Assembly (NCBI GenBank): GCA_019828565.1
Contig: JAHDYR010000015.1
Span: forward strand, 485,605-549,604
Direction of reading: 5' to 3'
Length of the DNA: 64,000 nt
DNA from: Carpediemonas membranifera BICM
Lineage: Eukaryota > Protista > Fornicata
Part shown: positions 12,061 through 53,717 of the stretch, in pieces
How the letters are laid out: each line of letters starts with the position of its first letter
Numbering within the stretch: position 1 is the stretch's first letter
The notes under the pieces: generated by a model
What the model saw: the letters and a program-made list of their open reading frames with translations, nothing else
What the model was told of the DNA's origin: nothing
The model's database searches: none
Made by a program: the position numbers and the translations under genes

Positions 12061-12109
12061 ACATACTGTTAGAATGGCCAGTTAATCCGGGGATATACGG
12101 AGGATAAAC
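12061..12109 (+). repeat. Left TIR (49 bp)
   Basis: ACATACTGTTAGAATGGCCAGTTAATCCGGGGATATACGGAGGATAAAC is the exact reverse complement of 53669-53717. Confidence 0.95.
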
Positions 12110-13145
12110 GCAAATTCCTTATTCGTGCTTCAGGGCGTTCGAAGTCCTAAGAAGCAGCTGAAATGATAGATGCGAGTGCATTAATGACATATCCATGCTT
12201 GATGTAACATGTGCGAGATTGGTGGTCGAGCAAATTGCCTCTCGCATTTTAAGGTCGAAGGCAAAAGTGGTCGTACGACCAAGTGGCCTTGTCAGCAAAG
12301 TCTGTGTGTTCTAAAGAGTATCCTCTGTTGTTTTTAGGCGTCAACTCCTTCTCAGTCGCCGGGAACTAATGACTGAATCAACCAATCAAAAGAATGAAGC
12401 TGTCCCCCAGAAAGCAGGCCATACTACGGTGGTATATAGTCAGTATACATCATCGGAGTATGTTCGGTTTTCTGGGGGACAGATTCAATCTTCTGTATCT
12501 CAAAATTTGCAATTTTTTATCGGCGATAAGATGGAATCAGAAGACTTGGCTCAGAGCTCAAGTGCACTTAGCTCCATAGAGCTGAGATCGGCAATTGGCA
12601 TGATCCACCGCCGCAGAAGGTGCCCAAAGAGGCGCTGACGTTGAGCGGTCGATCATGGCCGTTTAACACATCAACGGGGGCCTCATCCCATGCAGTATCC
12701 ATAACTTTTTACCATTTTCTTCTAGCTGCACTGGTTGGCAAATGAGCATTTTGTGTCGCCTTCATCATGGCAATATTCGAGATCAAATCCAGATTTGCTT
12801 TTTTTGTGCACAAGGAGCACAACAGCAAATTCGCAAGTAATGCAGATGAAAATCAGATGAATCTTAATCAGGCACTCTCATACACACACTGCTTTAGTTT
12901 CGGAGCCAACGTCCATAAACTGAAGGAGTTCTGAACATTGTTTCACCAATTGTGTGAAACTGGTGAAATTGTGAAATAGTGTTGAAACGGCCAGAGAAGA
13001 AGAAGGAACCCCGGCAGCGCAGTTGTAGCTGCTCTTATAGAGCTATAGCAACAGCCAAATTGTCTGATATATCTCACAGACCGTTGCGCATGTACCTGCC
13101 TAGTTTTTGTACAAAAATCTTGTTTTTTTAAACTCTACAGAAATC

Positions 13146-15402
13146 ATGGTTGCTCATATTGTGTTCGAGAGCCACATCGGTACAATATATGATGACCAGC
13201 CACGCTCAGTTGAGCGCATGAATTACCTTCTTGGCTGTACCTACTTCGCCATGGTCGGAATTGGCCTCAACTCCGCCAGAACAAGACCTCAGCGCGAGCA
13301 ATTCTGCCAGCTCGTCCGCGAGATGGAGGAGGCGGACCTGATCTCCCAGCGCATTCACGACGCAAGGTTCTTCCGCCCTCCAGCAGACTCCCGTCCCTTC
13401 CAACGTGCCGCAACCGCACACGGAAATCAACACCCTCCTCACCCTGTCTTCGTACGGGACGATTACCGCACCCACGCCATCCAGGAGCGTGCTGTGCAGG
13501 ACTACAACGACTCAGAGGAGCGCTCCGCCAACTTTTCTGAGATCATGGAGCTCACATCGATCCTGATGTACGTCCGCAATGGCTTCAACTCGACCCAAGA
13601 GCTCTTTAAGCTCATCAACAACATCTCCCGCCGGCTTGGAAAGCCGATCTCGAAGAACAAGACCGCGGAGGTGCTCATTAAGGACCTTGGCATTGACATG
13701 ACCAGAATATCTGGTGTCTCAGAGGCCCTCACTGAGGAGGAGCGCGCCTTCGTCAAGCATCTCGTGCCGTGCAGGTCGGTCTCAGGCAATACAACATGGC
13801 GGCGTACCATGTCCGGCACGCAGTCGCGACTTGAGCTCACGAACCGTTTGACTGTAGCCGACGGAGCCGAGCCGACTCCGTTTTTCGACCACGACCTCGT
13901 CGCCGACCACACTTGGGAGCGACCGACGCTCACCCTCCACTATGACAGCGAATCCGACGCTGTCCAGCACTACCAGTCCCTCAAAGGCAGTGTAGGTATC
14001 GCCCATCTGGGCAAGCGACTGAACAGCTCGACCTGGGACAAGGTGGAAACGGTGTGGTTCGATGGCGTGTACTATCTGCAGCAGGCAGTGCTTCACCCGG
14101 AGTGGCTCGAGTCTGACCAGACGAACTTCGAGCGTTGCTCTCGTGCCCTTCAGGACCCAGGCCATGTCGAGTTCCAACCACTAAAACTACTCCTGTGGCT
14201 CGACGCATGGAAGGGACATACCGCAACGTTCAAGATCCGCATCTACGACCCGTCAGGCTTCACGTTCCCTAACCGCATCACTCCCCCCTTCCGACTCGTT
14301 GAGTGTCTTGCCGGTGAGAAGGAGCTGACGGAGGAGGGAAACCTTCAACTCGTTGAGGAAGAAGTCGAGCGGATCTATCAAGCCCTCATACCGATCAGAG
14401 GAACTGACCAGGTCACCACCTTCGACCAAGTCATCGTCATGGGCGATCACGCGGCCATCAGGAAGCTGTCATCCGGCATCGAGGGTAATGGAGGGCACTA
14501 TCCCCAGCCCTTCAACAGCATCCGTCGAGACCACAAGGCGCTGCACCCCATTCCGGCGCACTCTCGGGTCACCTTGCATGATTTGCTCGAGCAGAAGGCA
14601 GCGTTCCACGCCGTGCAGGCCGACCCCGACCGTGTGCAGGACCCGAAAGAGGAGTATGGCAACTTCTCCGACAAGAGGGCCATCTTCGAGAACCGGCCAG
14701 AGCCCCGAGTCATCCACACGGAGCGAGTTGTCTTTTGTCCTCCGATCATGCACAACTCGCACCGCCTGCTCGAGCAAGTGGCACGGCTATGCGCCAGCTT
14801 CCCCGCTGATCGGAACGCAACTGCCGTAGACAAGCGCAAGCTCCAGCGCATGTCATCCAACCGCAGTATTGACCGCACTGTCGGGTGCAACGAGCAGTCT
14901 GCTGCCAGAGTTCGCATGGCGAACACCACGAACGAGGATTACGAGGCTCTTCCTGAGTCCGTCCAAGATATTGTGCGACTCATTGGCTATCTCCAGGCTC
15001 TTTACTACTCAACCGAGCCTGTCACCGACAGCAAAGTCGCATTCCACTTCTTGGCCGCGTCCATGTGCCACCTGTTCCACGTCATGCTCAGTCTGCAGGC
15101 ACACCAGACAAAGCTGGCGTTGCTCCCTCCTGGGCAAGCAGAGGAGAAGCCATGTGCCCAGACACTCTATGTCAACAGCAGGCTCACTGCCCAGCCTCTT
15201 CTTCACGATCATCTCCGCATTCCTCTTTTTTACCTCCTCGAGGAGTTCTTTGAGAGAGAGTTCATCAAGAACCAGGAGGTCCGAGCCGAGTTGCACAGGT
15301 CGGCCATGATCGAGAAGCTGTGTTTGACCGAGCAGACCACCCTCATCTGCACGTTCTTAACGGGTATTCGCTCGTTCGGTCGCCAGGACTACTCAGTCCC
15401 CC
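13146..15402 (+). CDS. Transib/Chapaev/RAG1-like DDE transposase, N-terminal ~750 aa (interrupted by an LTR element)
   Basis: Motif order LLLWLDAW (D1), VIVMGDHAAIRKL..G..G..YP (D2), PPIMH, LFYLLEEFFERE (E) matches the CMC/Transib pattern. The ORF lies inside TIRs. Confidence 0.7.
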
Positions 15403-15527
15403 TGTGGTTCGTTTGACGAACTATGTTTACAAGAGGAGAAGACTCGACACAATGGTGTCGAGGAGAAACTCCTTGACTAACTAATATCATATATAAATCT
15501 GTGTAATCTTGGGTGAGACCCATGACA
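15403..15527 (-). repeat. 125-bp 3' LTR of gypsy G2
   Basis: Identical to 32656-32780 and 44807-44931. TG..CA ends. Adjacent PPT GGAGGGGCAG (15528-15537, minus strand). Confidence 0.92.
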
Positions 15528-16090
15528 CTGCCCCTCCATGCCTCAATGAGGCATGACCCCAGACAGCGTGAGCTTTGACGGCTGGCTACTGCCAGTGGGG
15601 GTGAATGTTGGCTCTTGGGGGCCGGTCCTGGTGGGTGCCAACCACCGATCGAGCCCCTTTTTTGCGACCTTGGCGGGGACACAACAAGAAGCACAACGAC
15701 GTGCAAAATAGCACAGCTTACAATCGCGCGGTACCGCTGGGTTAGAAGGATCCTACCATAGGGGTTCTGCCCCTCCTCGGCTTTTCCTCGCCGAAAATCG
15801 AAATGTGACGTACCTTAAAATGCTTGGGTGCAGGTTATGGCCATCCAAGCACAACGATGGTGAAACACCGCCCCTTTCCAACTGTTTGCGCCATTAATCA
15901 GGTTGGTGCTGAAAATGGCATTTTCAGGCCTCAACGAGGCCTCTACGGCGAGATACGAGCCTTTTTCTTTGCAGCGTGAATTCACACCACGACTACGCTC
16001 AGATAGAGCTACTAAACGACTAAACAACATCAAGACAACAATAAAGAGATCATAACTCCATGTTTGAGCGGCTTTCCATTCGGGATTGGG

Positions 16091-18673: not shown

Positions 18674-21600
18674 ATGCACACTCCTCATCCGAGCCACCGG
18701 CCGGCAATGGACGCGTTTCCCAGGAACCCACAGGGCGGGTACGTTGCCCGAGCAGAAGATCTCCTCCCCGAGCATCCCATAGGGCCTCCTCTACGCAAGG
18801 AGCGCACGAGAACCGAGAAAATCGCCGACTTGATCCGGATGTACGGCGACCTAAAAGGGTATAGCAAGATAAAGGATCCCTTCCCCCAGGAGTGGATCAC
18901 CAGCTACAGTGGTGGCAGAATCCCAGCCGAGAAAGGGAAATAACGGCTACCCAAATGCTAGAAAATGACATCCTGCTATACCACTACGCCCTGATAACCG
19001 GAAGGCCATGGTGGGTAAGCCAGGCGGCCTGGAAAATCCACCGCGAGGACCAACAGCGCCGGCCACTGCCCCGATGCGGGCCGGCCTTCGTGATGTTCAC
19101 CTCCAAGGCCGATTACTCCCTGACCCCGGGTTTCCCAGCCTACGAGCGCCGGCAACGGCGCCTACAGGCGAGGCGGGCAGGGAGGGCTCCCTCCGGGGGA
19201 TTCATGCCGACTTTCCCCCTCCGACTTTTCGAGACCAATTTCGGCCACAAACACAAAGTTCCCCCAACAAGCCATGGGCCGGGGGAATGATGTAGACGAA
19301 GCTGGAACAGAGCTCACCAAGCTTGGAAAACGCTTAGCTACGACCGAAGAGTGGCAAAAAGTCCGAAGAGCAGCCGATTCCATCCTCGCCAAGTGCAACA
19401 ACACCACAGTGATCTTCTCGAGGGATAACGCCGCCAACTTCAAGGTATCAAGCCCGCCACCGGCTAGATCCTTGCTGTTCGAGCTAGTTGCCAGCACTCT
19501 CAAGGCCGCAGGTCACCAAAGCCTCACAGGGCCTGGGATCAGGACAAGGTTCGGCCAGCAGAGCGCCGCCTGGCTCCTCAAGGCAGGCGGCCAAGCCACA
19601 GCCGGCTCAGCGAAAGCGCCAGGTGCGGACAGAGCCCACAACAACGTCAACAACAAGTGGGCGGCCCTAGGTCGGGCCTGGGAGGATGCCCCCGTCCCCC
19701 TTAGCCCCAGACCCCCAGCAGGAGGCTTCCCCCCCCTTGACGGACAGGCCGTCAAGCCCTGGGAAGGTGGCATGTTCTCCGCGATAGCTGTCTACAGCAG
19801 GACCGATGGGGTGACCAGACCTGTGTTGGTTAGCAGGACACCCACGGATTCAGCCCTCAACATTGCCGGCGACGAGCTAGCGCGCAGTGAGGCCGAAGAC
19901 TTAGTGCTTCGCTGGACGGTTCCGGGCTTCAAAGAGCTGTGGGCCGCATGGGATACTACTACCCGGCCAATGCCGGCCCCTGAGTTCATCCACCCGGACC
20001 TCTGCGACGCTTCCACCCTCGTTAGCAGGATCGCAAACATCTGGATGGCGGACCAGGGTACCAAGCTGCTCGCCACCGAATCCACAGGGGACGGCCCGCC
20101 CAAGGGCAACGAGCAAACCGACAACCCACCCCACGAGGGCAACCCGGTCACCCCCCACCGAATAATGGCAGAGCAAGTGCAGGTGATAGCCTGCCCAACG
20201 GCGGCCCAAGGACGGACCCACCCACCAGGGGGCAACCTGGGCGTTGCCCCGCACAACGGCGGCGACCCGACCACTGGCCAACCCAACATGGGCGATCCAG
20301 TCGCCCCCTCGTTCATTGGGGGCGAAGCAGGTTGGAACCCAACTAGCGGGGGAACCCCGCCACCATGCCCAGCGGCGAAAGTGCGGGCTCGGAGACCGGG
20401 GGTACCCAAGATGGCCCCCGGCCCAACGCCGACGACTCGGCCAGAAGAGTCCCTGGCAGTGATAGTGACGTCAACCCGCCAAGGGGTAGAGAACTGTCAG
20501 CCAACAGCAGACTCCCCCCGTCCTGCCCGCTCACCAACCCGCAGGGCAAGAGGATGCTGATCGGATGCATTGACTTCGAAGCGTCCAAACCCGCATCCAA
20601 GGCGGGGGATGAGGCCGTCATATGCGAAGGGGCGGTCATAGTCTTTGACCCCGCCAACGGGAATATCGTCGCCAGTCTGCACGGGATGTTAGGCGAAGAT
20701 ATTCGGGTGGCCGACCTCGACCAGGCTCTGATGAGCTCAAGAATTCTCCACGGTTGCCCCCCAGCCACCTTCGTCGACATCACCACTGGGCAGGCCCCCC
20801 AGGGATTCGAAAGCACATTCCCAAACAGCACCACATGGTGCGCGGAAATGATCGATGCCCTCCGGCGTCTCGAAGGACACCATAACGCGTTCATCCACCT
20901 GACTGCCAAAGGGGTGGAAGCTGAACGAAGCGTCCTCACGAGCGCCAAATACGTACCGGATTCCACGGCCAGGGCATGGGTAGCCACCCACCTAATCGAT
21001 GAAGCCGGCCTAGATGCGGTGTACCCCCGTCTCAATAGCACCCTCACCCTCTTCTACCCCCCCTCCCAGGAGGACCGCCCGGTCCGAGAGACCCTCCCAC
21101 AGGAGGACCAGAAGGCAGCCGAGCAGGCCAAGGTCTGGACCCGCGACCAGCAAAGGAGAAGGGAACCCAAGGGGCTGTGCCCCTATCACAGAAAACGCAC
21201 CAGCCTACTGTCACTGTGCGCTTGCGGATGTATCGCTCTTCTACACAAGACTCTCCCTGGCCATCCACATGCTGTATAACCCGTGGACCTGGGCTGATGT
21301 GGGAGCGGAACTAATCGCACGAGGAGGGGGAAAGTGACGGGGGCACAAAGCCCCATCATTAGAGTAGGACACGGGGTCCCAGACCTGGCTGTAGAGATCA
21401 ACCGCCATAGAGGGCGAGAGGTCATCACACCCCTGGGGCAACTACAGCACGTGATCTTTACCACCAAGCCGCGTCCGAAGGAAATCCACATGGCCAACAC
21501 GACCGCGCAAGAGTTCAGCACAGGAAAAGGAATCCTAAGGGTCCTTGAAAGGAGGGGCGTAGCCGTTCTCAGCCCGGACTCCTGCCCAAGCACGAGACCC

Positions 21601-34664: not shown

Positions 34665-34830
34665 CGGTCAGGCTAGCTGTCCTAGCCTCTAGACATACTT
34701 GCTCTACCCAACGGGGATATCCCACCGGCAACGAGCATAGTGGAATGGCTTGCAGGCACGCTTTCGAGCCCAAACCGACCGTCTCCTCGAGAGACCGCGT
34801 CAAAGAATGTCTGTTGTGGCTTACCTTACC

Positions 34831-35910: not shown

Positions 35911-37030
35911 AACGCCACAAATTATGATCGTTGAAATAGAGGGTAACAGGTACGGTGTTACAAAGATCCTTTGTCAGGAAGGTCAGCGACGGCAACGGGT
36001 AGCCAGCGAACTGGATGAGTAGGACGAATGACTCCCGCAGATGGTTACTCGAATAGAGTTCGAAATGTTCTAGAACGTCCACCACACCATAGGTGGCTGA
36101 GGTGTCAGTCAGCTGGAGCAAAGAAAGAAAGAAATTTATGGTGCTTGGATTCTGACCCCGGACTGAGCTTGTTTCCCGTTGTCTTGGAGCTGAGTGCCCC
36201 GGGGTACTGCCTATTTCCCGTGGCAAACTGGTCAGCAGCGTTTGCCTTGGGCTTTCGGTGCTACTGTCTCCGCGGAAAGCCGATTCCAATCGCCCCAGAG
36301 GCCCTGCGGCCATCTCCGTGCAAATATGCTTTCCTGTCTCCCTGAAAGTCCGGCAACTATCCGGGGAGCCTGGGGGTCTGTCCTCGGGGCATTGACAGGC
36401 AGGATCGTCCTGCAGAACCTTGACTATGACACTCCTTGCTTCCCTGCAGTCCTTGTAGAGCCGTTCAGCCACGGCACCCTCTCGTCTGTCCGGTTCCCCA
36501 ATTCCATGCCCCCTCGACTCTGTTAAGAAGCCTACCCGAAGGCGGGGAAAGTGACTAAGTCCATGCTGTCTACCCCGGTTAGGTGGCGTGGGTCAGGGCA
36601 TGGGTGGTGTACCCCCAGGCACTAGGCCTGGTTGTCCTGTTACCCCTTACAACATTTCGCTTGCACTACATGTCCTTGGTTTCCCATGTCGTTAACAAGG
36701 GCGGCAGGGGCACCTGTGCCCCTCCGACCCCCGTGGCCAGTCCCTGCAGTTTCCTTGGGGTCCCAACGAGTGGTGCAACCATATGAATATGGATTTCCTT
36801 GACCTTATCCTTGCTCTGTCCTTGTTGCATGTCCTTTCTTTCTTATTTCTGGTCTGTCCTTCCTGTTATTTCCTTGCAGTCGTTCCTTCCCTTGCTTTGG
36901 TTCCTGGCTACCGGGATACGTGGGGCCTTTCCTCACTGATCCCAGGAGCTTAGCACCAGCGAGGGTGGTCCATGGCTGATTCCTTGTCCATCCCTTCCCG
37001 GTCCTGGAGTCAGGGGTTCATGACATGCTT

Positions 37031-40000: not shown

Positions 40001-40473
40001 TGGCCGGATGGAGGGCCATACACGTTGATGACTAGTATGTCCCTGCCGGTTCTCATTATGCTGGCTTGCACTCTTCCCGATAGGCTGTCCGTTATGCCGA
40101 TGTCCCACTTTGCAGTTGCGTGTGGGCTCACTATCGTGCCGATGCCTTCCCTTGTTCCCTTCCATCTTGGCGCAGGTTCGTCATTGCCTGCTATGCCTAG
40201 TTGTCGGTTGATGCGGTGCTGACTTTTGACATCCGCCTTTCGTTTTTCGTTGGCTAAGACCAGGTCCTCTTCCGTCTCCCTCCCTGCTAGTGCGTAGTCA
40301 AGGTCCATGAAGCAATGAACCCTCGTATTCGCCGTTCTCCATGTCTCTTGTATGAGTACTGCCTCTATGTCCTTCAACCTTAGCTGAATCGCCGTTGCCA
40401 TAGACGCCGTGAAGTCCTTTCCTCTTCCTATGTGTCCCTCTGTGTTCAGACTAAGTATCTTGTAGGTTACCAT
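37031..40473 (-). CDS. LINE1-B ORF2 APE-RT (single frameshift near 38710)
   Basis: ORFs 38605-40473 and 37031-38644. Same motifs as copy A. Confidence 0.92.
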
Positions 40474-40805
40474 TGCCTTTGTCCTGTTTCCTTATCCTGC
40501 GAATTCCCAGAATTTGGGAGCCCCAGCTTCCCGCTCCTCTCCTGCTATCCTTGTCCTAACAAGGGGCCTAGATGCCGGTCTCGGTGACCCTTGTCAGGCC
40601 AACCTTGTTACCACCTGGTGACCTTCCATTCTTCGGGCAGGGTACTTAGGAGGGGGACGATATGACGTGACCCCCCTTTGGCTGCCGCTACAGCCTACCG
40701 GCAGTGCATTTCAGCTAATGCCGGGCCCTGGGTGGGAGCCAGGGCTTGTGAATTATAATAGAAAATGTTGCTTGTTCCTTGAAAGAATACTGCTTTACCA
40801 TGTCC

Positions 40806-43800
40806 TTACTCCTCCTCCGTGGACTCCCCACTGCCGCTGCAGCTGTCCTCGGCCTGACTCACTTGCTGTCCTTGTAGACTCTGCATTACCGTGATGAACT
40901 GGGTCATCAGGTCCATGGGTGAGATCTGCTTGGCCTTCTTAGCCTTCTTGTGCTTGTGCCGGGGGATCGTGGGCTTCTCCTTGCTGGGCTTAGTCGCGAC
41001 GCCGGAGAGCACCAACCTTCCGTGGCCTTGCTCTTGCATGAGTCGGGCAGCCTTGAGCGCTGAGATCTCTTGTTGCGCCTCTGCCAACTGCTTTCGGAGC
41101 CGCAGCTTCTCCGAGTCCATGCCGGTTGCCTGTCTGCTTCCAGACTCCCAGTCCATGTCCTCTTCGTGCCTGCTTCTCTTTCCGCTGTCCGAGTCCATGA
41201 TCCTACTCGTGCTGCCCTCCTTGCGCTTGAGCGTCGTGGAGGAAGAGTGATCCTTGCTGTTGTCCATGCCTCCCTCTGAGCCTCTACCGGCCCAGGTGTT
41301 CCCGCTGAACGAGCCTCTCATCTGCGTTCCCGTGTTGTCCTGTCTCTCCCTGTCGTCTCCTCCGTGGTTACGATCCGAGGTCCTGTTCATGTTACCAGCT
41401 CTGTCGCCGGTTCTGTCGTCAGCTCTGACACCAGCTCTACCGCCGGCTCCGTGTCCTACCCTTCTGTCCTCTTCCCCGTCTCCATGCTGGTCGTGATGTC
41501 CTTGATCCGCGTCCTGGCCGAAGTGCCTGCCCACCATCCTGGTGCTAATCCGCCTCGCCTTTTCCTCCAGGCCGTTGTCGAAGAACCTACTTTGGTATGG
41601 CTGTTCGGACTTTCCGTCGATGGTGGGGACATACGTGATGCCTGGGACATTGACTGTGTTGGCTCTGGGCTCGTCCGGGATAGCTGCCGAGACTAGTCTG
41701 GCCCCTTCCTTGCGCATGCGGCTTAGGATGGTCCCAGCCTCGCTGACCCTGACCATGCCCCAGTCTCTCGGGATGAAGCTCGCCCCTAGGGTGATCCTAC
41801 CCCTGTTCCTGGGGGCCTTGACGTTGACTATGACCTTCTCATAGTCCCTGAGGCTCTCTGCTAGGTCGTCGCAGCCCCAGACTCCTTGATGAGCCGTAGC
41901 CTCCTTCGAGGGCCACCACTCGTATAGCATGGCCATGGTTATGATGTCCTCCTCCCTTGCTGCCCCTAGGCCCTTCCTGACGCGTACCATGCGGAGCTGG
42001 TTAGCCGTGGCTCTTCCATGATGGTCCATAGCGGGCTTCTCTCCAGTACACCTTCGTTGTCCATGATTGTGAGGGGGGGCAGTAAGATGCCCTTCATGCC
42101 CAACAGAACCTCCCCGAACCCGAAGCCGATGCCGAAGCGGTGTCCGTTGTCCGGGACTACGAGGATCCTGTCGCCGACTTCCCTGCTGACGTCCCTTGCG
42201 TCCCCGATCGGGTACGTGCCGAAGATCTCAAAGGTGTCCCTCCTTGTCGCGAATTCCGGGCCTCCCATGATATCCATGCCCGGCTCCGCCTTCCCGACTG
42301 CTTCCATGGTCTTGTCGAGTGCCTTACCCATGTAGTGGTAGACGTCTGGGGTGCTCATCCTCTCCTTGCATAGGGCCCTGATCCTGGCTGTGAAGACTAC
42401 TGTATCCGCCAACCCACAGTGGTAGCAACCCGCGGTGTGTCTGTGGTACGGACAGACTCCCTTGGGCTCGCTCCTGTTCTGCCATCCATTTGACCATGTT
42501 GTTACTGCTTCCAGGTAGTTGGCCTTGTCGAGGTTGTCCCTGAGGTTTTGGCCAGCCTCCTCCTTGCCGTTTTTCTCCAGGATCTCTGGTAGCTTCTTCT
42601 CGTCCACCAGCCTAGCTTGGAAGAATTCCCTGGTTCCTTGCTCCAGTCCATTTGTGGGGTTCGTGAGGAGGAAGCTTTCCATCTCCACCCCCTTTGCATA
42701 CATGATTATCTTCCAACCCTCCGACCTTTCGATCCTTGCCAGCTGAGCCGCCAGGCGGTTGGCCCAGTCCCTGAAAGTATGTATGTGCTTCTCATACTCG
42801 ATCGGCGGCCGCCCCGTCCCGACCTCCACGAAGGTGGCCGGCGGCAGCCCCGTCACTGCCCATGCCGTGTACCTCGCTTGGTCCATGCTTGCTGCCGGTA
42901 TGTCCTGGTAATACAGGCCATGCCCGTGTCCAAGAATGTCCCCAGTGCTGAGGTCAAAGAGTACGATCCCGCCCTCAACCGGGATGGCAGGGATCCCTGC
43001 CTTCTTGACGCCAGGGTCTGCGCACTCGAAGTCGATGGCTCCGATCACCAGTCGTTTCTCCTTGTCCTTTCTAGGCATCCTCGGCGGCTGGCTGCTGACC
43101 TTGTTTGAGTCGACCTCCTCGTCCTGGTCGATCTTGCCTTGGTTGGCCCCGACCATGTCCTTGTTCACTTCCAGGAGGCTGTCGTCGAGGCTTCTTCTGC
43201 CGGGCATGGTGGCCTGCTGGCGTCGTTCCTCCTTGTCCTTGACATGTTGCTCCTCGTCTCCGTCGATGACCGTGCTAGCGGACGACCTGTCCAGATCGGC
43301 ATGTTCGTCCCTATTGCTGCGGACCGAGGTGGCCTTGAGCACTTCCAGCCTCACCTTCCGGAACGGCGGCTCGTTGCTAAGGGGGTCTCCTCCCCTTCGC
43401 CCAGGATATTGGTTCTGCCCTTCAGGTAGATCCCTGACTTGTTCCATGCTGCCTGCCATATGGCCGGGGCCTCCGGTGTCTGAAGCCTGAGGATGTCCCT
43501 AGCCTCCTCCATGAAGCGGCTGATGGACCATGCTGACGTGTCGCTTAGCTCTAGGATGACCCTGTACTTGCCGTCCTCTTGCTCGTAGGCCACTCTGGTG
43601 ACCGGGCCTTGGTTTGCCGGATCCCATACCTTGTCGTAAGGCACGCCTTCTACGGCCTCGTCTCCATGAGCCCCTGATACCAGTATGAACGACCCTTCGG
43701 CCTTCTTGACGCTGTCCCTGTCTACATCCCATTCGATGGGCCCATCTTCCTTCGGCTTGAGGATCGCCGTCTCGATGTCCTTCTCAGATGGCCATCTTGC

Positions 43801-44306
43801 CATGCCAGTGAAGCCCGCTTTCAGCGTCTTGGGCTCCAGTGCCTGTGCCATGTCCTTTGCTTCCTCGTCTCTGGGGTTGAGCGCCTCTGTGAGCATGTAG
43901 AAGAGGTCGCGGAGGCCGTGGATGCCGCATGGGTTCCTGAGGATGATGTCCTTGTTGTCAGTGACGCCGGTTGCGAAGAGGATGCGTCTGGCGTTCATGA
44001 TTACTTCCTTGCGTCCTTTGGAGTTCGCATTGAGCGACTTTCCTGTAAACTTGCCTGTTCTACGAAGAAGTAGAGTCCTTGAATCGTTCCTTTCAGCGAG
44101 GAAGCTGTCCAGTAGTTCCCTGATGTCCTCCCACTGCTTCTGCGTGGAATCCCTGATCCTTGTCGGTATTTCTACCTGCATTGTTGAGTGCAAAATTTCT
44201 CCCCTTTCCTAGTCCATAAACTGGGTCGGAATTTTTGGGTCCGAAAGTCGGGCCACATGTACATATCCGGGTGAGGTCTCCGTCCAGGCCTTCCAGTTTC
44301 TCCCAT
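40806..44306 (-). CDS. LINE1-B ORF1 with a DEDDh/Maelstrom-like domain (domain unbroken at ~42390-43060)
   Basis: ORF 41966-43459 holds IDFE..PVE..YAKG..CPYH..HCGLAD in one frame. Confidence 0.8.
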
Positions 44307-44783
44307 TGTCCATGCTCCGTACTATATAGGCCATTCTTTCAAAAAGGCGCGGTCCTAAAAATGCGTCGCCCTTTTCTGAGTAACGGGGCCTTTCTGTGTA
44401 GTTGTTGTTGCTTTGTTCGTAGTCTCCTTTTTAGCCTCTATCGACGGCCCCTGTTTCCCTTTTGTGCTGCCCTTCCTTCCTTGTGGTCTTGACAAAACCA
44501 TGTAGCCGCCGGTGCTAGCACTGGCCCTCGACGGTTGTTTTCCTTTTCCTTGTAAACATACGTTCCATGAAGACACTTTGATTCCTTGGTATGGGCGTGG
44601 AGCTCCCACTCGCGCCCAGCGGTATGCCCTGATAGCAACCCTTGAATGTTCAGACAGGAGGCCAAGGCCGCTCCTTCTGAGCTCCATGGGGCACTGCCCT
44701 ATCCATATAGGCCAGGCCTGTTGGTCCTTGTCCATCCATGATCGAAGTGTTTCCACTTTGCTGAAATCATTGGTGAACTTCAA

Positions 44784-44931
44784 ATCAAAACGTGGAATAC
44801 TAGTATTGTGGTTCGTTTGACGAACTATGTTTACAAGAGGAGAAGACTCGACACAATGGTGTCGAGGAGAAACTCCTTGACTAACTAATATCATATATAA
44901 ATCTGTGTAATCTTGGGTGAGACCCATGACA
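44784..44931 (-). repeat. G2 5' LTR (44807-44931) plus leader up to the gag start
   Basis: Identical to 32633-32780. Flanked by CCCCC, matching 15398-15402. Confidence 0.92.
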
Positions 44932-44935
44932 CCCC

Positions 44936-45210
44936 CGCTGAACAGGCTTCGTCGTGTCCGAGTCCACCAATGCTGCAGACAAGCTCGCTCATGGTTCGCC
45001 ATTCGCAGCCACATGGAGGCAAGGCACCAATTCCATGCCACGGCGGCGGTGGTGCGCCTCTTCCAGGAGCTCGTTGACGAGATGTGGCAGTACGTCAACG
45101 ATTATACGGCTTTGGCATGGGACGAAGAGTCTGGGGTGATGGTTTGCGAGTTGGCAGACATGGGTGAGGAGCTTGTTTGCTGCATTTGCGGTCATGCACG
45201 CGCTGAGTAG
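44936..45210 (+). CDS. Probable C-terminus of the DNA transposase
   Basis: In frame with 13146-15402 if the TSD is 4 bp in a C6 run (SVP|PLNRLRR...CCICGH), giving ~843 aa in total. Confidence 0.6.
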
Positions 45211-45333: not shown

Positions 45334-46258
45334 ATGGAAACGCCACTTCCGACATGGCTGACGATGAATTTATCGCAACACAAGGCCTATATTCAATATG
45401 TCAAGCTTTCAGACAAGTCTGAGCTCTTGCCGTCTGTCAGGGCCTTCTTCAACAGAGATCTGGCGACTTCGAACCTCGACTGTCTGAACTACTCATTCGT
45501 CATGTATGTCAGACCCACTACACTTCTTGTTAACACAGTCTCATCGCAATTCGTGGGGTTGAGATGGACAACATCAAGGCTGCATGCCTTCTCTTCCGCG
45601 AGTCGTACAGGGAGGGGCAGACCCTGAGCGGACAACTGCACCAGGAGCGGTTTGTCATCGGCTTACGGACAGCCGTCTCCTGCAGAGGTCTTGGGTTCGC
45701 GAGGGTGCTTCTTAGCATAGCATCTGCCGAAGAACTCGTCCGACTGCAGTGCGACAAGCGACTCCAGGACATGTATGCGTCCTTTGGCCTCAAGGAGTCA
45801 TCGGACCCGTCGCAGGTCGAGCAGCTGGTGGACACGGGGGCAACCCACTTGCCATTGTCACGATGGAGGGCACGATGGGTCCCAACAAGTGGACCAACCT
45901 CGGCAAGAGCCTGACAGAGTGCTGTGGGATGATAATGCAAGGCTCTACGTTGATCCGCGTGACCAACCATGGTAATAGACTTGATCAGCACGCTCATGGG
46001 ATGCCTGCTTCCGACAAGAGGAGTGTTGACTCGTTCGTGGAACGCACCCGTGTGTCCGTGCGCCGTGAACGTGCGGCAAAACAGCCTAACGTCACCCGCA
46101 TCAGGCAGAAGTTGATGATTATCCGCCATTACAACCTTCGTTCTTTCACGCTGGTCAAAGAGATCAAGGAAACGAGGACCGAGATGCGTAAGGAGAAGAA
46201 AGCCAACTTCTGGGACAGTGAATGGAATATTTCCGTTGAGGATGACGAAGAAGTGTAA
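45334..46258 (+). CDS. Transposon cargo gene, unknown function (~295 aa; intron 45504-45538, frameshift near 45838)
   Basis: Removing GTATGT..TAACACAG joins ORF 45334 to ORF 45564 in frame. A G-run shift joins it to ORF 45749-46258. Confidence 0.6.
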
Positions 46259-46282: not shown

Positions 46283-47044
46283 TTATAGCTCCTGTGCCGA
46301 ACACTCTAAGTAGTAATTCATGATGGCTTGGTATACCTTGCGACGCAGCACATCACGCGATTCTGCCTCAGCACGTTCCGCATTCCGCTTGGCAATGACA
46401 GAAGTGAGCTGACTGAGTGTCTTAGCCTCCTTCTTCAGAACTCTGGTGGGTCTGGCGAAGATGAGATCCGCGTCGCGGTCACGGCAAGGCTTGCTCAGGA
46501 CGAGCTTGACGTCATCGACCGTCACACCGCACGATGAAGCAGCGAAGGCATGGACCTTAGCCCGGTAGGCGATGGGAATGCGGTGAAAGGCATCATCCAT
46601 CTCGCGGACAGTCGCGATGAGTGGGTCGTCCGTGTCCAGCTCATCTGTCTGGGCGTCAAGACTGAGGAGAGCCTTGAAGCGGTGACGCTTGTCCTCATCA
46701 CCGCCTCCCTGCCACTTGCGGCTGATCTCTTCGACCGACTGGAGATTGCCGTAGAGCTTGTCCTTCTTCAAGGAGGCTACTTTCATTTTAGGGACCTCGG
46801 CGGCAAACTTCTGGCTGAAGTCGACAACCCATCCGTTTGCGCGGGTAATATCGTCATTATTAAGGAGGAAATTGCTGATAAAGGTCTGAACGATCTCGAT
46901 GGGCGTCTTGTGAGCTTTTCGGGCTGTTTTCGTGGACTTGTTGGACTTGCTCTGGCTCTTTTGCTGCGCTTTCTTGCCAAGAGCCATTCTCCTCTCCTTT
47001 TGAGCTTCAGTGGCCTGTATATTGCCTTGTTTACTTCTTGCCAT
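46283..47044 (-). CDS. Cargo protein (253 aa) with a histone H3-like basic N-terminus
   Basis: Intact ORF starting MARSKQ and containing KSTKTARKA. Confidence 0.7.
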   Translation of the reverse strand: MARSKQGNIQATEAQKERRMALGKKAQQKSQSKSNKSTKTARKAHKTPIEIVQTFISNFLLNNDDITRANGWVVDFSQKFAAEVPKMKVASLKKDKLYGNLQSVEEISRKWQGGGDEDKRHRFKALLSLDAQTDELDTDDPLIATVREMDDAFHRIPIAYRAKVHAFAASSCGVTVDDVKLVLSKPCRDRDADLIFARPTRVLKKEAKTLSQLTSVIAKRNAERAEAESRDVLRRKVYQAIMNYYLECSAQEL

Positions 47045-47461
47045 CGTTGTTTCCTTAAAATGCGTGTGAAAATGTGAAATGAACTGTGACTCTCGACATT
47101 GCTGCGCAGCTATGGTATTCCAACGGCACAGAACGGGTTTATAGCATGCATATGATCCATTCTGGTGCCTTTATCCTCTATAACCAACATCAGTCCATCA
47201 AAAATGAATCTTGCAACAGAATACTCATCCACACGCATCGAGAACGAAAAAGAAGCATATAACCAACATCAACAACCTAATAGAAGGCTGCATGCAAGCG
47301 TAGAGCTCTCCTAGTCAATTCTTCATTTTCACCACCATCGATCTCCACGTCAGGATGAAACCGTGCGCCCAAAAGCTCAGAGATGCCGTTATAGATGATA
47401 TAACGACGTCTCTGAGCTTTTCAGCGATTTCAGTTTCTGGCCATGGATAAGCTACAAATCC

Positions 47462-47526: not shown

Positions 47527-47772
47527 AAATCGAAAATGGAGCGATGAGATGCCCATCGAAAAACGGCCAAAAACAGCGCAGGTGCAGAATGAGCTGAAAA
47601 TCGGCCAAGGGGGTAGCTCTTGGGTCTTTATGGCTGATCGGAGGTATTTACATGACAGCTGGCAATATTTATTGAGATAAAACGTATTTCATTTTTTCGA
47701 GAAAGTCTTCTGAGGACCAAATTGACAATGGTTAACGAAGACATCATCTCTCTCGGCAAACTGAAGGAGACA

Positions 47773-49905
47773 ATGCTTGCTCCTGACGATTCTGGTATGT
47801 CACTTTCATTTTCACGGTCCTATTTACACAGATGATTCATTCCGTGCATACGACGCCCTTTCGTCCACAAAGAGCCGTATAACCTGGCTGCAAGATCACG
47901 GCATCGTCTCTGATGACCCTCTGTTCTTCGTTTGCGTCCGTCTGATCAGCATTCGTACGATCAACGTTGTTTTCGGGTTCCCGTTGAAGCGCACTTTAAG
48001 CCAGCACGTTCACGACTATGGAGTTGCCAAACTACGCGCGATATGTGACGCAACTAACCGCAACTACCTCTGCGAGGTCGACTTTGACTCTCCCGACACA
48101 ATTGAGGCATTCCGACGGAAGTTTTGTGACCACTTCACCGCCAAATCTGTTCATAAGGCTCTAGTCGGCGTCGACTCGCTCCCTGTTGAGAAGCAGGTTG
48201 AGATTTACCGCGCATTCCACCTTGTGTTGCGCCACAAGGACTCGAAGAAACTCGATTCTCGTGTTCCGGCAGGCCAATTTGGCCAGTTTATCGCCCACGC
48301 CCAGCTCAGCAAGAAGCTGTCCTTCGCTGGCTCAGAGAAGCTGGCCGAGGAGTTGGCTAAGATCGGTTCGCTCGATCCGTCAGCTCCTCTGAAGAGGAAG
48401 ATCGCTCGTCTTGAGAAGGAGCTCGCCTCATCGACTGCTGCTCTGATGAAGGTCCAAGAGGAGTTAGTCCGGGCCCAGGACCACTCAGCAGCAGCCACCA
48501 AGCCTTCTGCCGTCGTTGCTGCCCCTCAGCCGCTTCCGGTTGTCGACGCAGAGTCCACGACACACGATGAATTTTCCGACACTGACGAGTCCGAGTCTGA
48601 TGACCACTCTGAACCGGCCGCCATGCAGGGTGACGGCGTTCCTTTGCCCCAGACTGATCAAGACATCGACGTAGAGTCTGATGTGGACGACACAGACACC
48701 GTTGGTTCTCTCCTTCAGCAGCTAGACGACACCATTGCAGGCCTTGATGATGTCCCTGAGTCTGTGCGCTTGTTGGAGCAGTACGAGCCCCTTGATAAAA
48801 CGGCTTGCTGAGGAGAGGGAGGCGAGGGAGGCGCTTGAACAGGCTAACAGAGAGTCTGAGGAGTCCCAGAAGAGACTTGAAGCTGAGTTAGGTCAGCAGA
48901 AGGCCGAGGATCAGGCGATCCATCAGTTTACTCAAGCAGAGTTGGCACGCGCGAGTGAGGCTGGGCTTGAAGCGCTCGCCGATGAACTCGAGGACAACTG
49001 GGCTGAGCTTGTCAGGCGCGCCGAGGAGGCAACAGTGGAGCTTGACCGCTACGTTCCTCTCGCTGCCTTGATGGTACTGTTCCAGAGGAACAATGTGACT
49101 GGAGCCTTATGGACTCGGATCAATAGCACCATGATGAGGTACGGGGGCCAGAAGTTCATAACGGTCCCACCTCTCGACCTCGGTCTGTCGCCAGAGATGA
49201 AGGCTATCATCAAACAGCACTCTCCGACGCCTGCCAATGTTCCCCCCTATGCAGATATACTTACGGAGCGACGTTGATAGGCAGAAGTACATCGACGTGG
49301 AGTACGACAAGGTAGGCGAGCGAGTTCTCAAAGATCGTAAGAGTTGGCGGAAGATTGCAGTCAACCCGGATGGATTGTGCATCGGCTACTGCCTGCAGAA
49401 GGTTGAGAATGGCGAGTTCGACAAGAAGTTTGCGGCAGAGGAAGTGGCAGCAGTGAGGGAGGAGGTGCGCGCCTGGGGATTCTCCGATGCTGGCGAGAGG
49501 CTGAGGCTTGAGACGTCTAACGTGTTCGTGCCCACCCTGATGTTCGACGATGCCACTGATTGGTACAGCAACTTTGGTGTCATGGCCTGGTCAGCTCTGA
49601 AGAGCAAGACTGTAGTCGTTATCTGGGTCAAGATGCTGACGTACCATGACAAGTATATTGTGCGGATGCATTTGACGGAAGTTTATGAGTCCGGCATGGT
49701 CCGGCGTGGATCTGATGAAGATGTGGCTGCGGCGCAAGCTATTGTGGTCGTCAAGGATGAGCATGCGACGCTATTTGTCCGCAAACGTTCAAAGGGTGGT
49801 AAGAGAAAGGCTCATACGACTTATATCAAGCGCAAGGCAGTCGATAAGGATCGCGAAAAGAGAGTTGTTGATGCCGAGGACGTTAAGCGTGGAGTTCCCG
49901 AGTAA
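47773..49905 (+). CDS. Cargo protein (~700 aa): coiled coil/acidic region plus an OTU-like cysteine protease (intron 47795-47831, two homopolymer frameshifts)
   Basis: ATG 47773 splices in frame. C-terminal VNPDGLC...W....VMAWSAL...KDEHA fits the OTU D-G-x-C..W..H pattern. Confidence 0.6.
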
Positions 49906-49932
49906 AAAAAGAGATGTTTTGACATTTTTAAT

Positions 49933-50742
49933 TCATTTCTTCCGCTTCTTGAGTGCCGGATACTGCTCCAGGAACCTTGTGAGATAGTTTGGATGAGAAA
50001 TGGGCAGACTCGGGAACCTAGCAATGGTTAAGACCTCACCCGCATCAAAGAAGATCTCGCCGTAACTGATACGAAGAAACTCTTCGGCCTGAATGACGTT
50101 CGTCGACTCAACCGCAAGGACTGGAAGGTCCTTGAGCAAACGGTTGGTGAACTGGCAGTTGGTGTCACTCTCACTGTGGTTGATGAGGTGTACACCAATG
50201 CCTTCACCTTCGCCGGCGTCGACGTGAATGTTGCTAGCGTCGAATGAAATGCTGTGTAAAGGCATAATGAACAATGAACAAACACCATGTTGCTGTTATT
50301 CGCGTGGTAGTCCTCGTCGGACACAATCCTACCGGCGTAAATGCCGAGGAGCTTTCCGGGCTCAATTGCGGCAGTTGCAATGAGGCCTCTACCCACGTCC
50401 GTGTGGTCGGGGAGCCAGACAAGGCTGCACCTCAACGGCAATGGAGGGGTGGGTCAGCCGGGTGGATAACCAACTCGGGGGTTCGAGGGGAGGAAGGTCC
50501 TTCTCGGCCTCCTTAAGCTCCCTGATCGACTCCTCGGGAGTGTTTGGGTAGATCGCGGCGACCAGATCCGGATGCAGTGCCTGAGTATGCACAACGGATT
50601 CAATGATGGAATCTTCGCTTGAGGAATCCTCCTGAGAATCATTTGAAGGCGCAGACGGCGGCGTCTTGCCCGCAGTGGACGTAATGGGTATTCTGATACC
50701 CCCAGGCTGCGGCTTTGGTGGGAGCGCCTTTCTTCTCGCCAT
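49933..50742 (-). CDS. SET-domain methyltransferase-like cargo (intron 50252-50283, one frameshift near 50410)
   Basis: GRGLIATAAIEPGKLLGIYAG, VDA, LINHS..N, EEFLRISYG are the canonical SET motifs. Confidence 0.85.
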
Positions 50743-50854: not shown

Positions 50855-51949
50855 TTGTGGTCCATATCCTTCCCTGCTGGTTCGGCCAACTACCAGTGTT
50901 GGAAAAAAAGTGGTAGTTGCCAAATGGAGAGGAAATTTGGCAAATTCGGTACCAGACGCATCAGCGACCATCCTCTCACGTATGAATGCGTCTGTGGAAT
51001 CACTAGGCCGCGTTCTGACCTTCGCAACCAGGGCCTGAAGGAATATGACGGAATCAGGTACACGCATGACTGCCCCTTCACCCTGAGCAAGCTTGTGAAC
51101 CGCCGCATCGTTATCCTGCTCGAGCCAGTCCATGGCTTCGAAGCACCTACTTGTGCGAACCCGGTCTTCACTGTCACCGGGCTTGCTGGCTCCGAGGGGT
51201 ACCACAAGCGCATGAAGGCCATCCTCGATCTCGTCAGCGACGAGTGGCTCACCACGGTTGCCGTCAGTTTCGTCTCGACGACCCACCTCGGCTCCATACT
51301 GCAACAGTTGGCTGCAGAATTCGCCAATTTCGAGACATTCTGGGTTGTTTCTGGCCACAGCGAGACCACAACGTCGAGAATGATCGTTAATGCGAGCGCT
51401 AACGAGTTCCTGTACCTTCACGATATCGTACAGATGATCCTCTTCGCTTTCCGTGAGCCATCCCTCGTCACCACCAGCCGGGTTCGGCTCATCTACTTCG
51501 CCACCTGTACCGGAGCGGACAATAGCGAGTTCTCTCTGCTTAAGCAGTCCATTTCGACCCAGGCATACGAGCATACGTGCATCATTCTCACTCCGGAGAA
51601 AATGCTTGCCAACGAACTCGTCCTGCAGGACTGCTTTTGGCTCTACCGCACTACATGCATGGACAACCCGCTCCACTTCGTCTCGCGTTACTTCTCCGGC
51701 TATGGGCTCGCACCTGGCACAGCAGGGAGACGGGTTATCGCGAATGGATCAATGTCCATAACCCCGGGCGCGATTGAGATCCTCACAGCCACTCAGTTCC
51801 GCACGCCAATCCCTCTTCCCGAGATGGTCGACCTTGTTTCTGAGGTACTTGCATATAGACCACTGCATAGATCTCCGGCGGATGTTATGGCCTCGCGCTA
51901 CATTACTGAGATGACAGTTGCGCACAGAGCGGCACTGGAAGACACTTAA
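50855..51949 (+). CDS. Cargo protein with an N-terminal Cys/His cluster and a possible clan CD (caspase/CHAT-like) peptidase
   Basis: 364-aa ORF. FWVVSGHS and LIYFATC resemble the strand-His and strand-Cys dyad motifs. Confidence 0.45.
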   Translation: MWSISFPAGSANYQCWKKSGSCQMERKFGKFGTRRISDHPLTYECVCGITRPRSDLRNQGLKEYDGIRYTHDCPFTLSKLVNRRIVILLEPVHGFEAPTCANPVFTVTGLAGSEGYHKRMKAILDLVSDEWLTTVAVSFVSTTHLGSILQQLAAEFANFETFWVVSGHSETTTSRMIVNASANEFLYLHDIVQMILFAFREPSLVTTSRVRLIYFATCTGADNSEFSLLKQSISTQAYEHTCIILTPEKMLANELVLQDCFWLYRTTCMDNPLHFVSRYFSGYGLAPGTAGRRVIANGSMSITPGAIEILTATQFRTPIPLPEMVDLVSEVLAYRPLHRSPADVMASRYITEMTVAHRAALEDT

Positions 51950-51972
51950 AGTTCAAAATCTCCCTATTTAAC

Positions 51973-53194
51973 TTACTCAATTGGCTTCATATCCGCCACC
52001 TTCTGGTAGACAGTCATACACTGGTCGCAGAACCTGACACGATAGTCCTGGCCGTCGAGATGGAACTCAGCATAGCTGAAGTGTTTCTCTTCGCAGAACC
52101 AGTTTAGGCACGCCCGGCAGACGCCAGTGTCCTTTGTCGACTTGTCTCCGTCCTTGATACACGCGTGACATCTGTTAGACCTTCCTGCCAGACTGCAAGC
52201 TGCGCAAACCTTTCTGTTCTTACCATCAATCCTCTTCTCTCTGACACACTGAAGATGCATGAACTGATGGCAGAGATAGCACGTTTCATACTCGTTTCTT
52301 TTTCATGTTTGGGTTGAAGTACCATTCAGGTGAGGCACAAACAGCGCATGCGAACAGTAACTTACGCTGATATAGCTTCAGAAACGTCGCTTGCTTGAGG
52401 GCGGGGACCTTATCGTTCATTTCAACGGCCTTGGGTGACTGCTTGAGGAGATCAGTGACAGTTGTGGAGAGTGAAGCCGTCACCATCGCGGCAACCTCCT
52501 TCAAGTCAGCCTCTTCGAGCCTCGATCGCTTCTGAGCAGGCTCATGCATCTGCGCATCAAAATTAAGCTTCTTGACGGGGGAATCAGGCTTGATGGTAGC
52601 CAAGTCAGCTCTTTTTCTGAGCTTTGGTACCAATGTTGTCACTGGAGTCTTTGTGGGTGTCTCTGCGGGTGTTTCTGCTGGGGTACGTGGCTCAGGCTGG
52701 AGCTTGCGATGCTTGATCCTGATTACAACGGCTGGAGGCCATTGAATGCCGGTGCAAGTGATCAGACTGGAGACATCGTGGAGTCCAAGTCCCCGAAACA
52801 GCACAGACATCCTGTTTCTAAACTCCTGCAAGTGTTCAGCTGCATTTGCTCTGTCTCTGACAACCAGGTAGGGTATCTTTGTGCCAATGAGCTCTGTGCC
52901 ACCCTTTCTACTTGCCACAAATGCCTGAATGGGCTCAGTAGTCGTGCGCCTGACGGAGTTTGCAATAGCAATCTTGCGAAAGCCGTTGCAGAGGCCCGAT
53001 ATCACATCCTGCATGCCAAGGAGAGCGCGATGAACGTCAGAGGTCGTCAGACCGATAGTTGGGATGTCCGCGACGTCGAAAAAGCATTCCAGGAAGCTAG
53101 TCACGAACAGCCGGCGGTACTCTGTTCTCTTATCCGATCCGCAAGACGTGCCCTGCGAAATCTCAGCTTTCTTCGCAGTTTCACTGGTCGTCAT
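51973..53194 (-). CDS. PHD-finger cargo protein (~406 aa; one frameshift near 52300)
   Basis: The joined frame reads CAVC..ETCYLCHQFMHLQC..VCAAC (C4HC3). A second cluster follows: CHAC..CRAC..C..H..CDQC. Confidence 0.75.
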
Positions 53195-53668
53195 ATTCTC
53201 ATCTTAAACTGCGCAGGTGTTGACGACAATGTTACGGTTATCCACGAACGAAAGGCTTAATCATATGACCAGTTGCATCCATGAAGTCGGCAAGATACAA
53301 GATTCTGTTCGAGAAATACGAAATCACATCACTGGGCTGAATTGCGAGGGGTTGGTGAATGAGAGGCTGAATGACACACAACACGTTCTGGAAGAGATAG
53401 GAGATATGTTTATAGATGTAATACAGCAACTTAAAGACCACTAGCACGTTATTATCACTTTGAATAAGCAATGAATGGTTATGCAACATCAGCACCTACC
53501 TACGAATCACAAGAATGCCCCTAGCACGTCGTATGCAAGCAAAAATGAGACTTACCCGTACCTTCCGCACGTTTCTCTACGTTTCACAAACGTTGGTGAA
53601 ACGTGTGAAATAGTGAAAAAGATACGGGTGAATCTCATTTTTTCTTGCAGTTTCTTGTGCAAAAGGGT

Positions 53669-53717
53669 GTTTATCCTCCGTATATCCCCGGATTAACTGG
53701 CCATTCTAACAGTATGT
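53669..53717 (-). repeat. Right TIR (49 bp)
   Basis: Exact reverse complement of 12061-12109. Confidence 0.95.

Follow-up and report, generated by a model that had tools for sequence, protein, structure and literature searches.

Carpediemonas membranifera BICM is a metamonad protist, and the window analysed here is a stretch of 64,000 nucleotides of its genome (assembly GCA_019828565.1, contig JAHDYR010000015.1, positions 485,605 to 549,604 of the forward strand). Between positions 12062 and 53716 the window holds one cut-and-paste DNA transposon bounded by terminal inverted repeats (TIRs), which has multiplied recently. The account of this element favoured here, and judged likely, is that of a 12.1-kb transposon whose transposase has a predicted RAG1-like fold, which carries a set of SET-domain, PHD-finger and g7 genes, whose window copy has been disabled by a nest of retrotransposons and whose movement may be guided by chromatin. 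Three aspects are new: a metamonad transposase family without sequence-detectable relatives, the combination of a predicted RAG1-like fold with a 2-bp target duplication and the loss of zinc motifs, and a conserved set of three companion genes which, judging from their sequences, would include a writer and a reader of histone marks.

The initial annotation described perfect 49-bp TIRs lying 41.6 kb apart, and a perfect inverted repeat of 49 nt is present at that spacing in the window (12061-12109 versus 53669-53717), its true length being 48 nt by comparison with other copies. The ends of the element are set at 12062 and 53716 because other copies stop at the same base with differing flanks, and the 49th matching pair is a chance agreement of flank bases. 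The left TIR (12062-12109, + strand) begins with CATACTG, is the perfect inverse of 53669-53716 and has the same end at position 663 of locus L009; the right TIR (53669-53716, - strand) ends with CAGTATG, and its last base is also where the copies in L003, L008, L009 and L010 stop, their flanks all being different. The element, assigned to family A, measures about 12.12 kb once the nest is removed, and the full-length copy in L009 measures 12,130 bp. The four other C. membranifera copies of the family (L002/L003, L008, L009 and L010), found among related Carpediemonas loci drawn from the same assembly, are 99.2-99.6% identical, none of them contains the nest, and all five copies, including that of the window, sit on different contigs.

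In L009 the full-length copy lies within a copy of the long interspersed nuclear element (LINE) Z, with CG duplicated on both sides (CATGCCG, then the element, then CGACTTT), and the corresponding empty target site is the CG at 19208-19209 within the window's own LINE Z, which reads CATGC-CG-ACTTT. From the L009 flanks and this empty site it follows that the target duplication is 2 bp. A related element in L006, from assembly GCA_002919055.1, has 74-nt inverted repeats and interrupts a chromovirus pol gene, whose halves align to neighbouring residues (853 and 854) of a reference pol; the frame closes only with GC counted once, again a duplication of 2 bp. For the 13.9-kb element of family B (L005), GG begins both flanks. 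A Transib-type duplication of 5 bp was ruled out at every mapped insertion, and so was a single target site in chromovirus RNase H shared by the window copy and L006. The terminal CATACTG is common to families A, B (L005 3574) and D, with the L006 end at 2171, and the sequences diverge beyond it.

The repeats lie 41.6 kb apart in the window and the right one abuts a LINE fragment that leaves its duplication illegible, as could be the case if the two TIRs were parts of separate small elements and the genes between them ordinary host genes. This explanation has next to no probability, given that in L009 these termini enclose the complete unit of 12,130 bp, flanked by a 2-bp duplication and with its empty site available as sequence, that the internal genes and the right terminus are common to three further copies, and that family B and L006 repeat the architecture. 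The initial annotation had named unlinked host genes and two small elements as the findings that would tell against a single transposon, and had proposed a search for copies with the same gene order and target duplications; what was found instead is a whole unit in L009, further copies of the kind sought (L009 and family B) and linkage in diverged lineages. A single TIR-bounded DNA transposon, multi-copy, with target duplications and an empty site, is thereby confirmed.

The nest (15403-44931, 29.5 kb), which had been described as a structure bounded by long terminal repeats (LTRs) and to be removed from the element, is indeed a secondary insertion outside the element proper, as the four other copies without it demonstrate. 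The uninterrupted copies in L002/L003, L008 and L009 go directly from window position 15402 to 44932 (L010 does not span the nest site), and a run of C flanks the nest on both sides (15398-15402 and 44932-44936). This run counts 6 at the uninterrupted site in L002 and 7 in L008 and L009, and the duplication made by the nest can be placed only at 3-5 bp because the run length differs among uninterrupted copies. The nest is thus a later insertion near the 3' end of the transposase gene, and it disables the window copy. Its boundaries are 125-bp TG..CA LTRs, of which three identical ones are present (15403-15527, 32656-32780 and 44807-44931), and its order is LTR, gag-protease with a LINE insertion, LTR, full gag-pol followed by LINE Z, LTR. 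It is therefore a tandem or recombinant chromovirus and no simple nested pair. LINE Z lies in it on the + strand (from at least 18551 to about 28285), and a 10.2-kb LINE on the - strand (34596-44779).

The nest-free element consists of one large end-proximal open reading frame (ORF) and seven further ORFs, three of which have short introns; the earlier count of a transposase and about six genes, three with introns, was roughly right. The large ORF, taken as the transposase gene, is split by the nest into a 5' part (13146-15402, + strand; frame open from 13107, first in-frame ATG at about 13146, a 769-aa ORF) and a 3' part (44932-45210, + strand; about 92 aa, with an HxCC...CIC motif and the stop at 45208-45210). 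When the nest site is read with six C, as in L002, the frame continues from 15402 to 44932, giving a protein of about 844 aa from the first ATG. Searches and folds used separate exon pieces, the separate transposase halves and uninterrupted paralogues, and intron candidates were spliced out only to check frame continuity against annotated protein lengths.

Among known proteins, the large ORF is most similar to hypothetical proteins of C. membranifera (99% and 44% identity). An exhaustive HMMER search of 1.84 billion representatives yields 19 transposase clusters at 50% clustering, at least 12 of the family members being annotated Carpediemonas paralogues and the others coming from NCBI, ENA, JGI and Logan contigs. 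Against PDB sequences the transposase has no match at E <= 10, either as a single sequence or as a profile, and a Pfam search with the ten longest plain ORFs of the element returned nothing at E <= 0.01; the cargo domains emerged only when exon pieces, uninterrupted paralogues and profiles were used. Invariant positions in the family alignment are W364, D366, K376, R378, D381, T392, E404, D447, P481 and the motif PPxMH549xS. The motifs RTTGCNEQ, LQALYYS and LLEE..FER(D/E)F are common to all full-length members, and the C-terminal H-C-C...C-I-C motif is also kept in them. Of all the genes, the transposase ORF alone occurs in each lineage, and its distance from the left terminus is about 0.4-1 kb in families A, B and D and about 2.8 kb in L004.

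An AlphaFold model built on an alignment of 18 diverse sequences has a predicted local distance difference test score (pLDDT) of 78 and a predicted template modelling score (pTM) of 0.70. Its secondary structure runs strand (ending near D366), strand, strand, helix, strand (ending at D447), helix, the order expected for an RNase-H-like core. Compared with the PDB by Foldseek, the model has RAG1, RAG-like or Transib chains as all of its top 49 matches (E 9e-10 to 2e-3, about 480-785 columns), including mouse and zebrafish RAG1, amphioxus RAG-like protein (BbRAGL) and Helicoverpa Transib (HzTransib), and match 50 is noise (probability 0.35). The transposase is thus predicted to have a RAG1/Transib-like fold. 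A very improbable alternative is that the large ORF is no transposase, that the element, being non-autonomous, depends for its movement on an enzyme encoded elsewhere, and that the RAG1-like match is a modelling artefact. It draws on the ORF having no sequence-level match to any transposase family and no RAG1/CMC zinc motifs, on its being frameshifted in most copies as assembled, and on the first AlphaFold run, a 3-sequence alignment discarded as unusable (pLDDT 33). It is countered by the 18-sequence model, which matches RAG1-family chains only and places the invariant Asp residues on the expected strands, and by the presence of the ORF in every lineage near the left terminus.

The heptamer of recombination signal sequences and Transib ends is of the type CAC-A/T-x-TG, with which the CATACTG of the element agrees at five of seven positions, the third base being T and not C. 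RAG1, RAG-like proteins (ProtoRAG) and Transib are the only solved structures that match the predicted fold of the element's transposase. The element is set apart from Transib and RAG by its 2-bp duplication, by the lack of sequence similarity and of a conserved zinc site, by its metamonad host and by its seven extra ORFs. It is not a true Transib, since it fails a defining feature of that family, whose target duplication is 5 bp (PMC4411706).

The element fits in or beside the CACTA-Mirage-Chapaev-Transib (CMCT) group of DDE transposons as a putative new deep lineage. CMCT elements have CA..TG termini and 2-5-bp duplications (PMC12730594), and the element has both (CATACTG...CAGTATG in families A, B and D; 2 bp). 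The ends of PlavakaB (CATCA..TGATG, with 2-3-bp duplications; PMC12730594) resemble its CATAC..GTATG. ESTA is recognisable as RAG1-like only by HHpred (PMC12730594), and the transposase of the element is likewise RAG1-like only in structure-aware comparison; RAG1-like transposases outside animals have also been reported already (PMC12730594). In contrast to Mirage, Plavaka and ESTA, the element has no Pfam match to their transposase models among 18 members and no zinc motifs, and its duplication is not confined to TA (CG, GC and GG are seen). Some CMCT lineages with 2-bp duplications carry an epigenetic modifier gene of the TET/JBP type (PMC12730594), whereas the cargo here is SET, tandem PHD and g7. 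The initial annotation did not recognise the architecture from the described Transib/CMC families, which has to be corrected as regards the predicted fold of the transposase, which is RAG1/Transib-like, and the termini and 2-bp duplication, which fit CMCT.

The SET-domain gene (49933-50642, - strand) has two exons separated by a 32-nt intron (50252-50283); in the window copy, exon 1 contains an additional G at 50409. That this gene encodes a SET domain, as the initial annotation had it, is supported by several sequence comparisons: the window exons align with positions 1-37 (E 0.023) and 47-105 (E 0.003) of Pfam SET, a paralogue in L004 that has no intron reaches 22.3 bits over Pfam positions 1-105 (cutoff 22.4), the database entry of the annotated 225-aa orthologue in L010 lists Pfam SET, and a profile of three element SET proteins matches the SET domains of EHMT1 and EHMT2 in the PDB (E 5e-7). 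The GxG, NH-type and Tyr-containing C-terminal motifs of SET domains can be read in the window gene as VGRGL, INHS and ISYGE, and the NCBI label of the L004 protein is putative H3K9 methyltransferase. The intron (GTTTGT...TTTACACAG) has exactly the length implied by the L010 protein and the same position and phase in family B, where it measures 29 nt. Its 3' motif ACA(C/T)AG is shared with the annotated introns of g2 and g4. EHMT/G9a proteins have Cys-rich pre-SET and post-SET modules and ankyrin repeats, which the element SET proteins lack; these are 224-270 aa long, and their similarity to PDB entries is confined to the SET core (query 77-200), with no flanking Cys clusters.

The gene g8 (51973-53194, - strand, about 405 aa, with a window frameshift at about 52299) carries C-terminal tandem PHD-type zinc fingers in a Cys-rich part (51973-52400), a call already made from the DNA and now supported by its invariant C4HC3 pattern and by profile matches to PHD structures. 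The ligands C283, C286, C305, C308, H313, C316, C330 and C333 are invariant in five lineages, within a core C-x2-C-x2-aromatic-x-H-x2-C that is followed by a second Cys cluster. Most of the PDB matches listed for the g8 profile are PHD fingers (best E 2.8e-4), including the Jade-1 double PHD, BPTF, TAF3 and PHF2; single-sequence Pfam matches to PHD fall below threshold (E 0.014 and 0.031). In RAG2 the PHD finger is C-terminal, whereas the element has a separate PHD-containing partner gene, and a RAG2-type propeller is not in evidence in its protein.

The third companion gene, g7 (50924-51949, + strand, 341 aa), has ECVCG, SGH and IYFAxC motifs. Its protein is identical in three other copies and has orthologues in families B, D and E; across families A, B, D and E, SGH144 and IYFAxC194 are invariant, 50 residues apart. 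Clan CD (caspase-like) peptidases have a dyad of His and then Cys, each after a hydrophobic strand, in a caspase-hemoglobinase fold. The g7 motifs presumably resemble this dyad, and g7 is possibly a Cys protease with such a His/Cys dyad, going by the motif. The protease-like label given to it earlier thus keeps its conserved SGH...IYFAxC motif and its linkage to the transposase, and has no Pfam match and no PDB match by profile. The L004 ORF at 14645-15772 was considered as a g7 homologue and rejected at 12% identity. Word-indexed protein searches with the g7 and SET profiles returned only element copies and no host donor genes.

The linkage of these genes to the transposase extends well beyond the window. 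Family B has the order transposase, g2, g3, g4, SET, g7, g8, with 25-47% protein identity to family A. L004 contains two further lineages with transposase, PHD gene and SET, and in the neighbouring elements of this locus (1114-4857 and 8637-12574) the PHD and transposase genes stand head to head, 268 and 48 bp apart. The same locus contains the 20-nt palindrome TAGTGGCCAATTGGCCACTA twice, at 7113 and 21100. L006 and L007 (PPCM01000946.1 and PPCM01001064.1 of the unannotated assembly GCA_002919055.1, GC about 50%) both keep transposase, SET and g7, and L007 also g8; their proteins are 23-33% identical to those of Carpediemonas. Right ends of the L004 and L007 elements were not found within the loci retrieved. 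Chromovirus, RCC1-like and kinase genes adjoin the L006 and L007 elements. Altogether, synteny of SET, g7 and g8 with the transposase is seen in families A, B and C of Carpediemonas and in D and E of GCA_002919055.1, at 23-47% protein identity.

Capture of host genes is common among DNA transposons, and the chromatin-type genes might have been acquired passively in this way (transduplication), with no role for the element. Unrelated transposon lineages have picked up SET according to PMC12730594, which names HarbingerS and MuDR of Phytophthora as DNA transposons in which SET genes were known earlier. Gene content does change between families: an ORF at 49237-49905 is confined to family A, and two patches are 95-97% nucleotide-identical between families A and B (47117-47443 and 48569-49226 versus L005 9137-9462 and 10820-11476). 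The second patch forms the 3' part of g4 (97% nucleotide identity to family B), and the family A-only ORF begins right after it; such patches imply a probable recent recombination or gene conversion between families. Passive capture is nevertheless unlikely, as five lineages from two assemblies, at 23-47% identity, retain SET, g7 and the PHD gene together with the transposase, with ORFs and catalytic or zinc-ligand motifs kept, the SET intron has the same position and phase in families A and B, and neutral passengers are not expected to survive such divergence. Since ORFs and motifs are preserved despite the divergence, these three genes appear to be kept by selection as genes of the element, which argues that they are stable components and no recent captures. 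The Phytophthora elements, as PMC12730594 describes them, likewise have their own SET lysine methyltransferase gene with a transposase of a different superfamily; in the present element SET has a PHD reader and a third conserved gene as companions, all three kept across deep lineages.

In the favoured account, the transposase would excise and integrate the element through DDE catalysis at the CATACTG ends, as RAG1 and Transib do. The tandem-PHD protein would tether the transposase to histone H3 tails, recruiting or activating it, as the RAG2 PHD finger does for RAG1, and the SET enzyme would write or maintain a lysine-methyl chromatin state preferred by the element. The outcome would be insertion into tolerated chromatin rich in transposable elements (TEs), or modulated silencing. 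We infer the PHD and SET roles from domain content and linkage; going by the same genes, anti-silencing may be an alternative role beside chromatin-guided targeting. The earlier description of the cargo as a writer/reader/eraser set was overstated because no eraser is shown. Chromoviruses, the commonest neighbours of these elements, are Ty3 elements whose integrase chromodomain is thought to steer insertion into heterochromatin. They offer an analogy only, being retrotransposons with the reader fused to the integrase, whereas the reader of the element is separate and a writer is also encoded.

Several observations weigh against this account. None of the 18 transposase members matches any Pfam family, including the RAG1, CACTA, Plavaka and KDZ models, and the C(2)C and H(3-4)H zinc motifs of CMCT/RAG1 cores are not conserved in the family alignment: no conserved C-x2-C follows D447, and the sole conserved His motif, MH549-x-S-(H/F), has two intervening residues and a variable second His. 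The third catalytic residue is assigned to a Glu in the conserved LLEE..FER helix by motif and position alone. The substrate specificity of the SET protein is no more than suggested by its closest solved relatives, the H3K9-type EHMT enzymes. In the window copy only the first base of a possible TA duplicate is visible, and the right-hand duplicate is illegible because a 5'-truncated LINE adjoins the TIR. Five of the six mapped insertions are in or beside other TEs, and this siting could reflect selection against genic insertions rather than targeting; it fits the targeting of repeat chromatin and, equally well, survival only where insertion is harmless in a compact genome. Every copy as assembled also has frameshifts or insertions in the transposase or the cargo.

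As for the last point, the window copy differs from the others by the nest in the transposase and by single-base indels in g2, g4, SET exon 1 and g8. The L002/L003 copy has a LINE inserted at window position 13436, and L003 has a 2.8-kb insertion at 49216-49221. The T6/T7 run at 15226, immediately ahead of the LLEE motif, is in frame in the window and one T longer in most copies. Nearly all differences between copies are single-base homopolymer changes, and the C. membranifera assembly is based on Nanopore reads; these indels may be assembly errors or shared frameshifts, which decides whether any copy is intact. A programmed frameshift in the transposase was considered and rejected: families A and B shift near LLEE at different T runs, a few codons apart, and the shifts are read as homopolymer indels because the runs differ.

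The remaining cargo genes are less well characterized. Introns of 35 nt (g2) and 37 nt (g4), both publicly annotated in other copies, accompany the 32-nt intron of SET. The g2 gene (45334-46258, + strand; intron 45504-45538, window frameshift at about 45836) maps to an annotated 296-aa gene of L003, and its motif RG(K/L)G(Y/F)A, followed by LRLQCD...Y..GF, is kept between families A and B; in GNAT enzymes the acetyl-CoA-binding motif A reads R/Q-x-x-G-x-G/A. The family B protein approaches three GNAT models of Pfam below threshold (E 3e-4 to 0.04) and one N-acetyltransferase in the PDB (E 0.03); the family A protein has no significant match in the domain search, and the g2 profile reaches only E 0.95. 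These values hint faintly at a GNAT-type acetyltransferase. The g4 gene (47728-49277, + strand, about 520 aa) has an acidic, coiled-coil middle part, an intron near 47795-47831 and a window frameshift at 48788.

The 222-aa ORF at 49237-49905 (+ strand) had been called OTU-like, a label that finds no support: OTU deubiquitinases have an OTU domain (PF02338) with a Cys/His/Asp triad, neither the window nor the L003 version has a Pfam match to this domain at E <= 10, no PDB match was found at that threshold, only a DGxC string and a late His are readable by eye, and family B has no counterpart. The g3 gene (46283-47044, - strand, 253 aa; 40% identity to a family B ORF) has a basic N-terminus that begins with MARSKQ (47027-47044). 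The N-terminal tail of histone H3 reads ARTKQ, and the initial annotation accordingly described an H3-tail-like protein. In favour of this, MARSKQ recurs in one other element, at the start of a small basic gene (L007 3999-4370) that otherwise has no detectable similarity to g3; on the other hand, public annotation starts g3 in other family A copies at a later Met (window 46987), and the likeness of its N-terminus hints only weakly at an H3-tail mimic.

Subterminal palindromes occur at both ends of the element. The left one (12387-12495) is imperfect, with 52-nt arms that are 79% complementary, and the right one (53534-53649) is a self-inverted match of about 116 nt. Family B has a palindrome at the same offset from its left end as that of family A (L001 9365-9477). 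At about 110 nt each, they may serve as promoters or binding sites.

Other mobile elements surround the transposon. The 10.2-kb LINE, which encodes an endonuclease and a reverse transcriptase, occurs three times in the window (1290-9958, 34596-44779 and 53717-56873; 99.2-99.7% identical), and the last copy, inverted and 5'-truncated, abuts the right end of the transposon exactly at its last base. A chromovirus fragment lies outside the element at 10148-11932. Two tandem units about 70% alike (57293-64000), with a reverse-transcriptase-like region and a tyrosine recombinase (Phage_integrase, E 5e-9, 58633-60207), look DIRS-like. The 3'-terminal 65 nt of the LINE (34600-34664) recur beside both units (56804-56913 and 60397-60506), followed each time by the same 45 nt. 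A 3' module common to these unrelated retroelements is possible.

A bolder version of the account proposes that the RAG1-type transposase, the separate tandem-PHD reader and SET form one chromatin-guided module, that the pairing of RAG1 with PHD predates animals or arose repeatedly, and that the MARSKQ terminus of g3 acts in regulation as an H3-tail mimic; taken together, these proposals are speculative and rather doubtful.

With this element, the RAG1/Transib-CMC group would gain a lineage that is invisible at the sequence level, and its diversity and host range would be widened. The case also shows what transposon annotation relying only on Pfam or RepeatMasker misses; the genome paper of C. 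membranifera does not mention transposons. The RAG2 PHD finger couples V(D)J cleavage to H3K4me3, and the PHD partner beside a RAG1-like gene invites comparison with that coupling. Moreover, a DNA transposon that appears to keep SET and tandem-PHD genes over the long term makes testable the hypothesis that such elements carry chromatin machinery of their own, be it for targeting or for anti-silencing.

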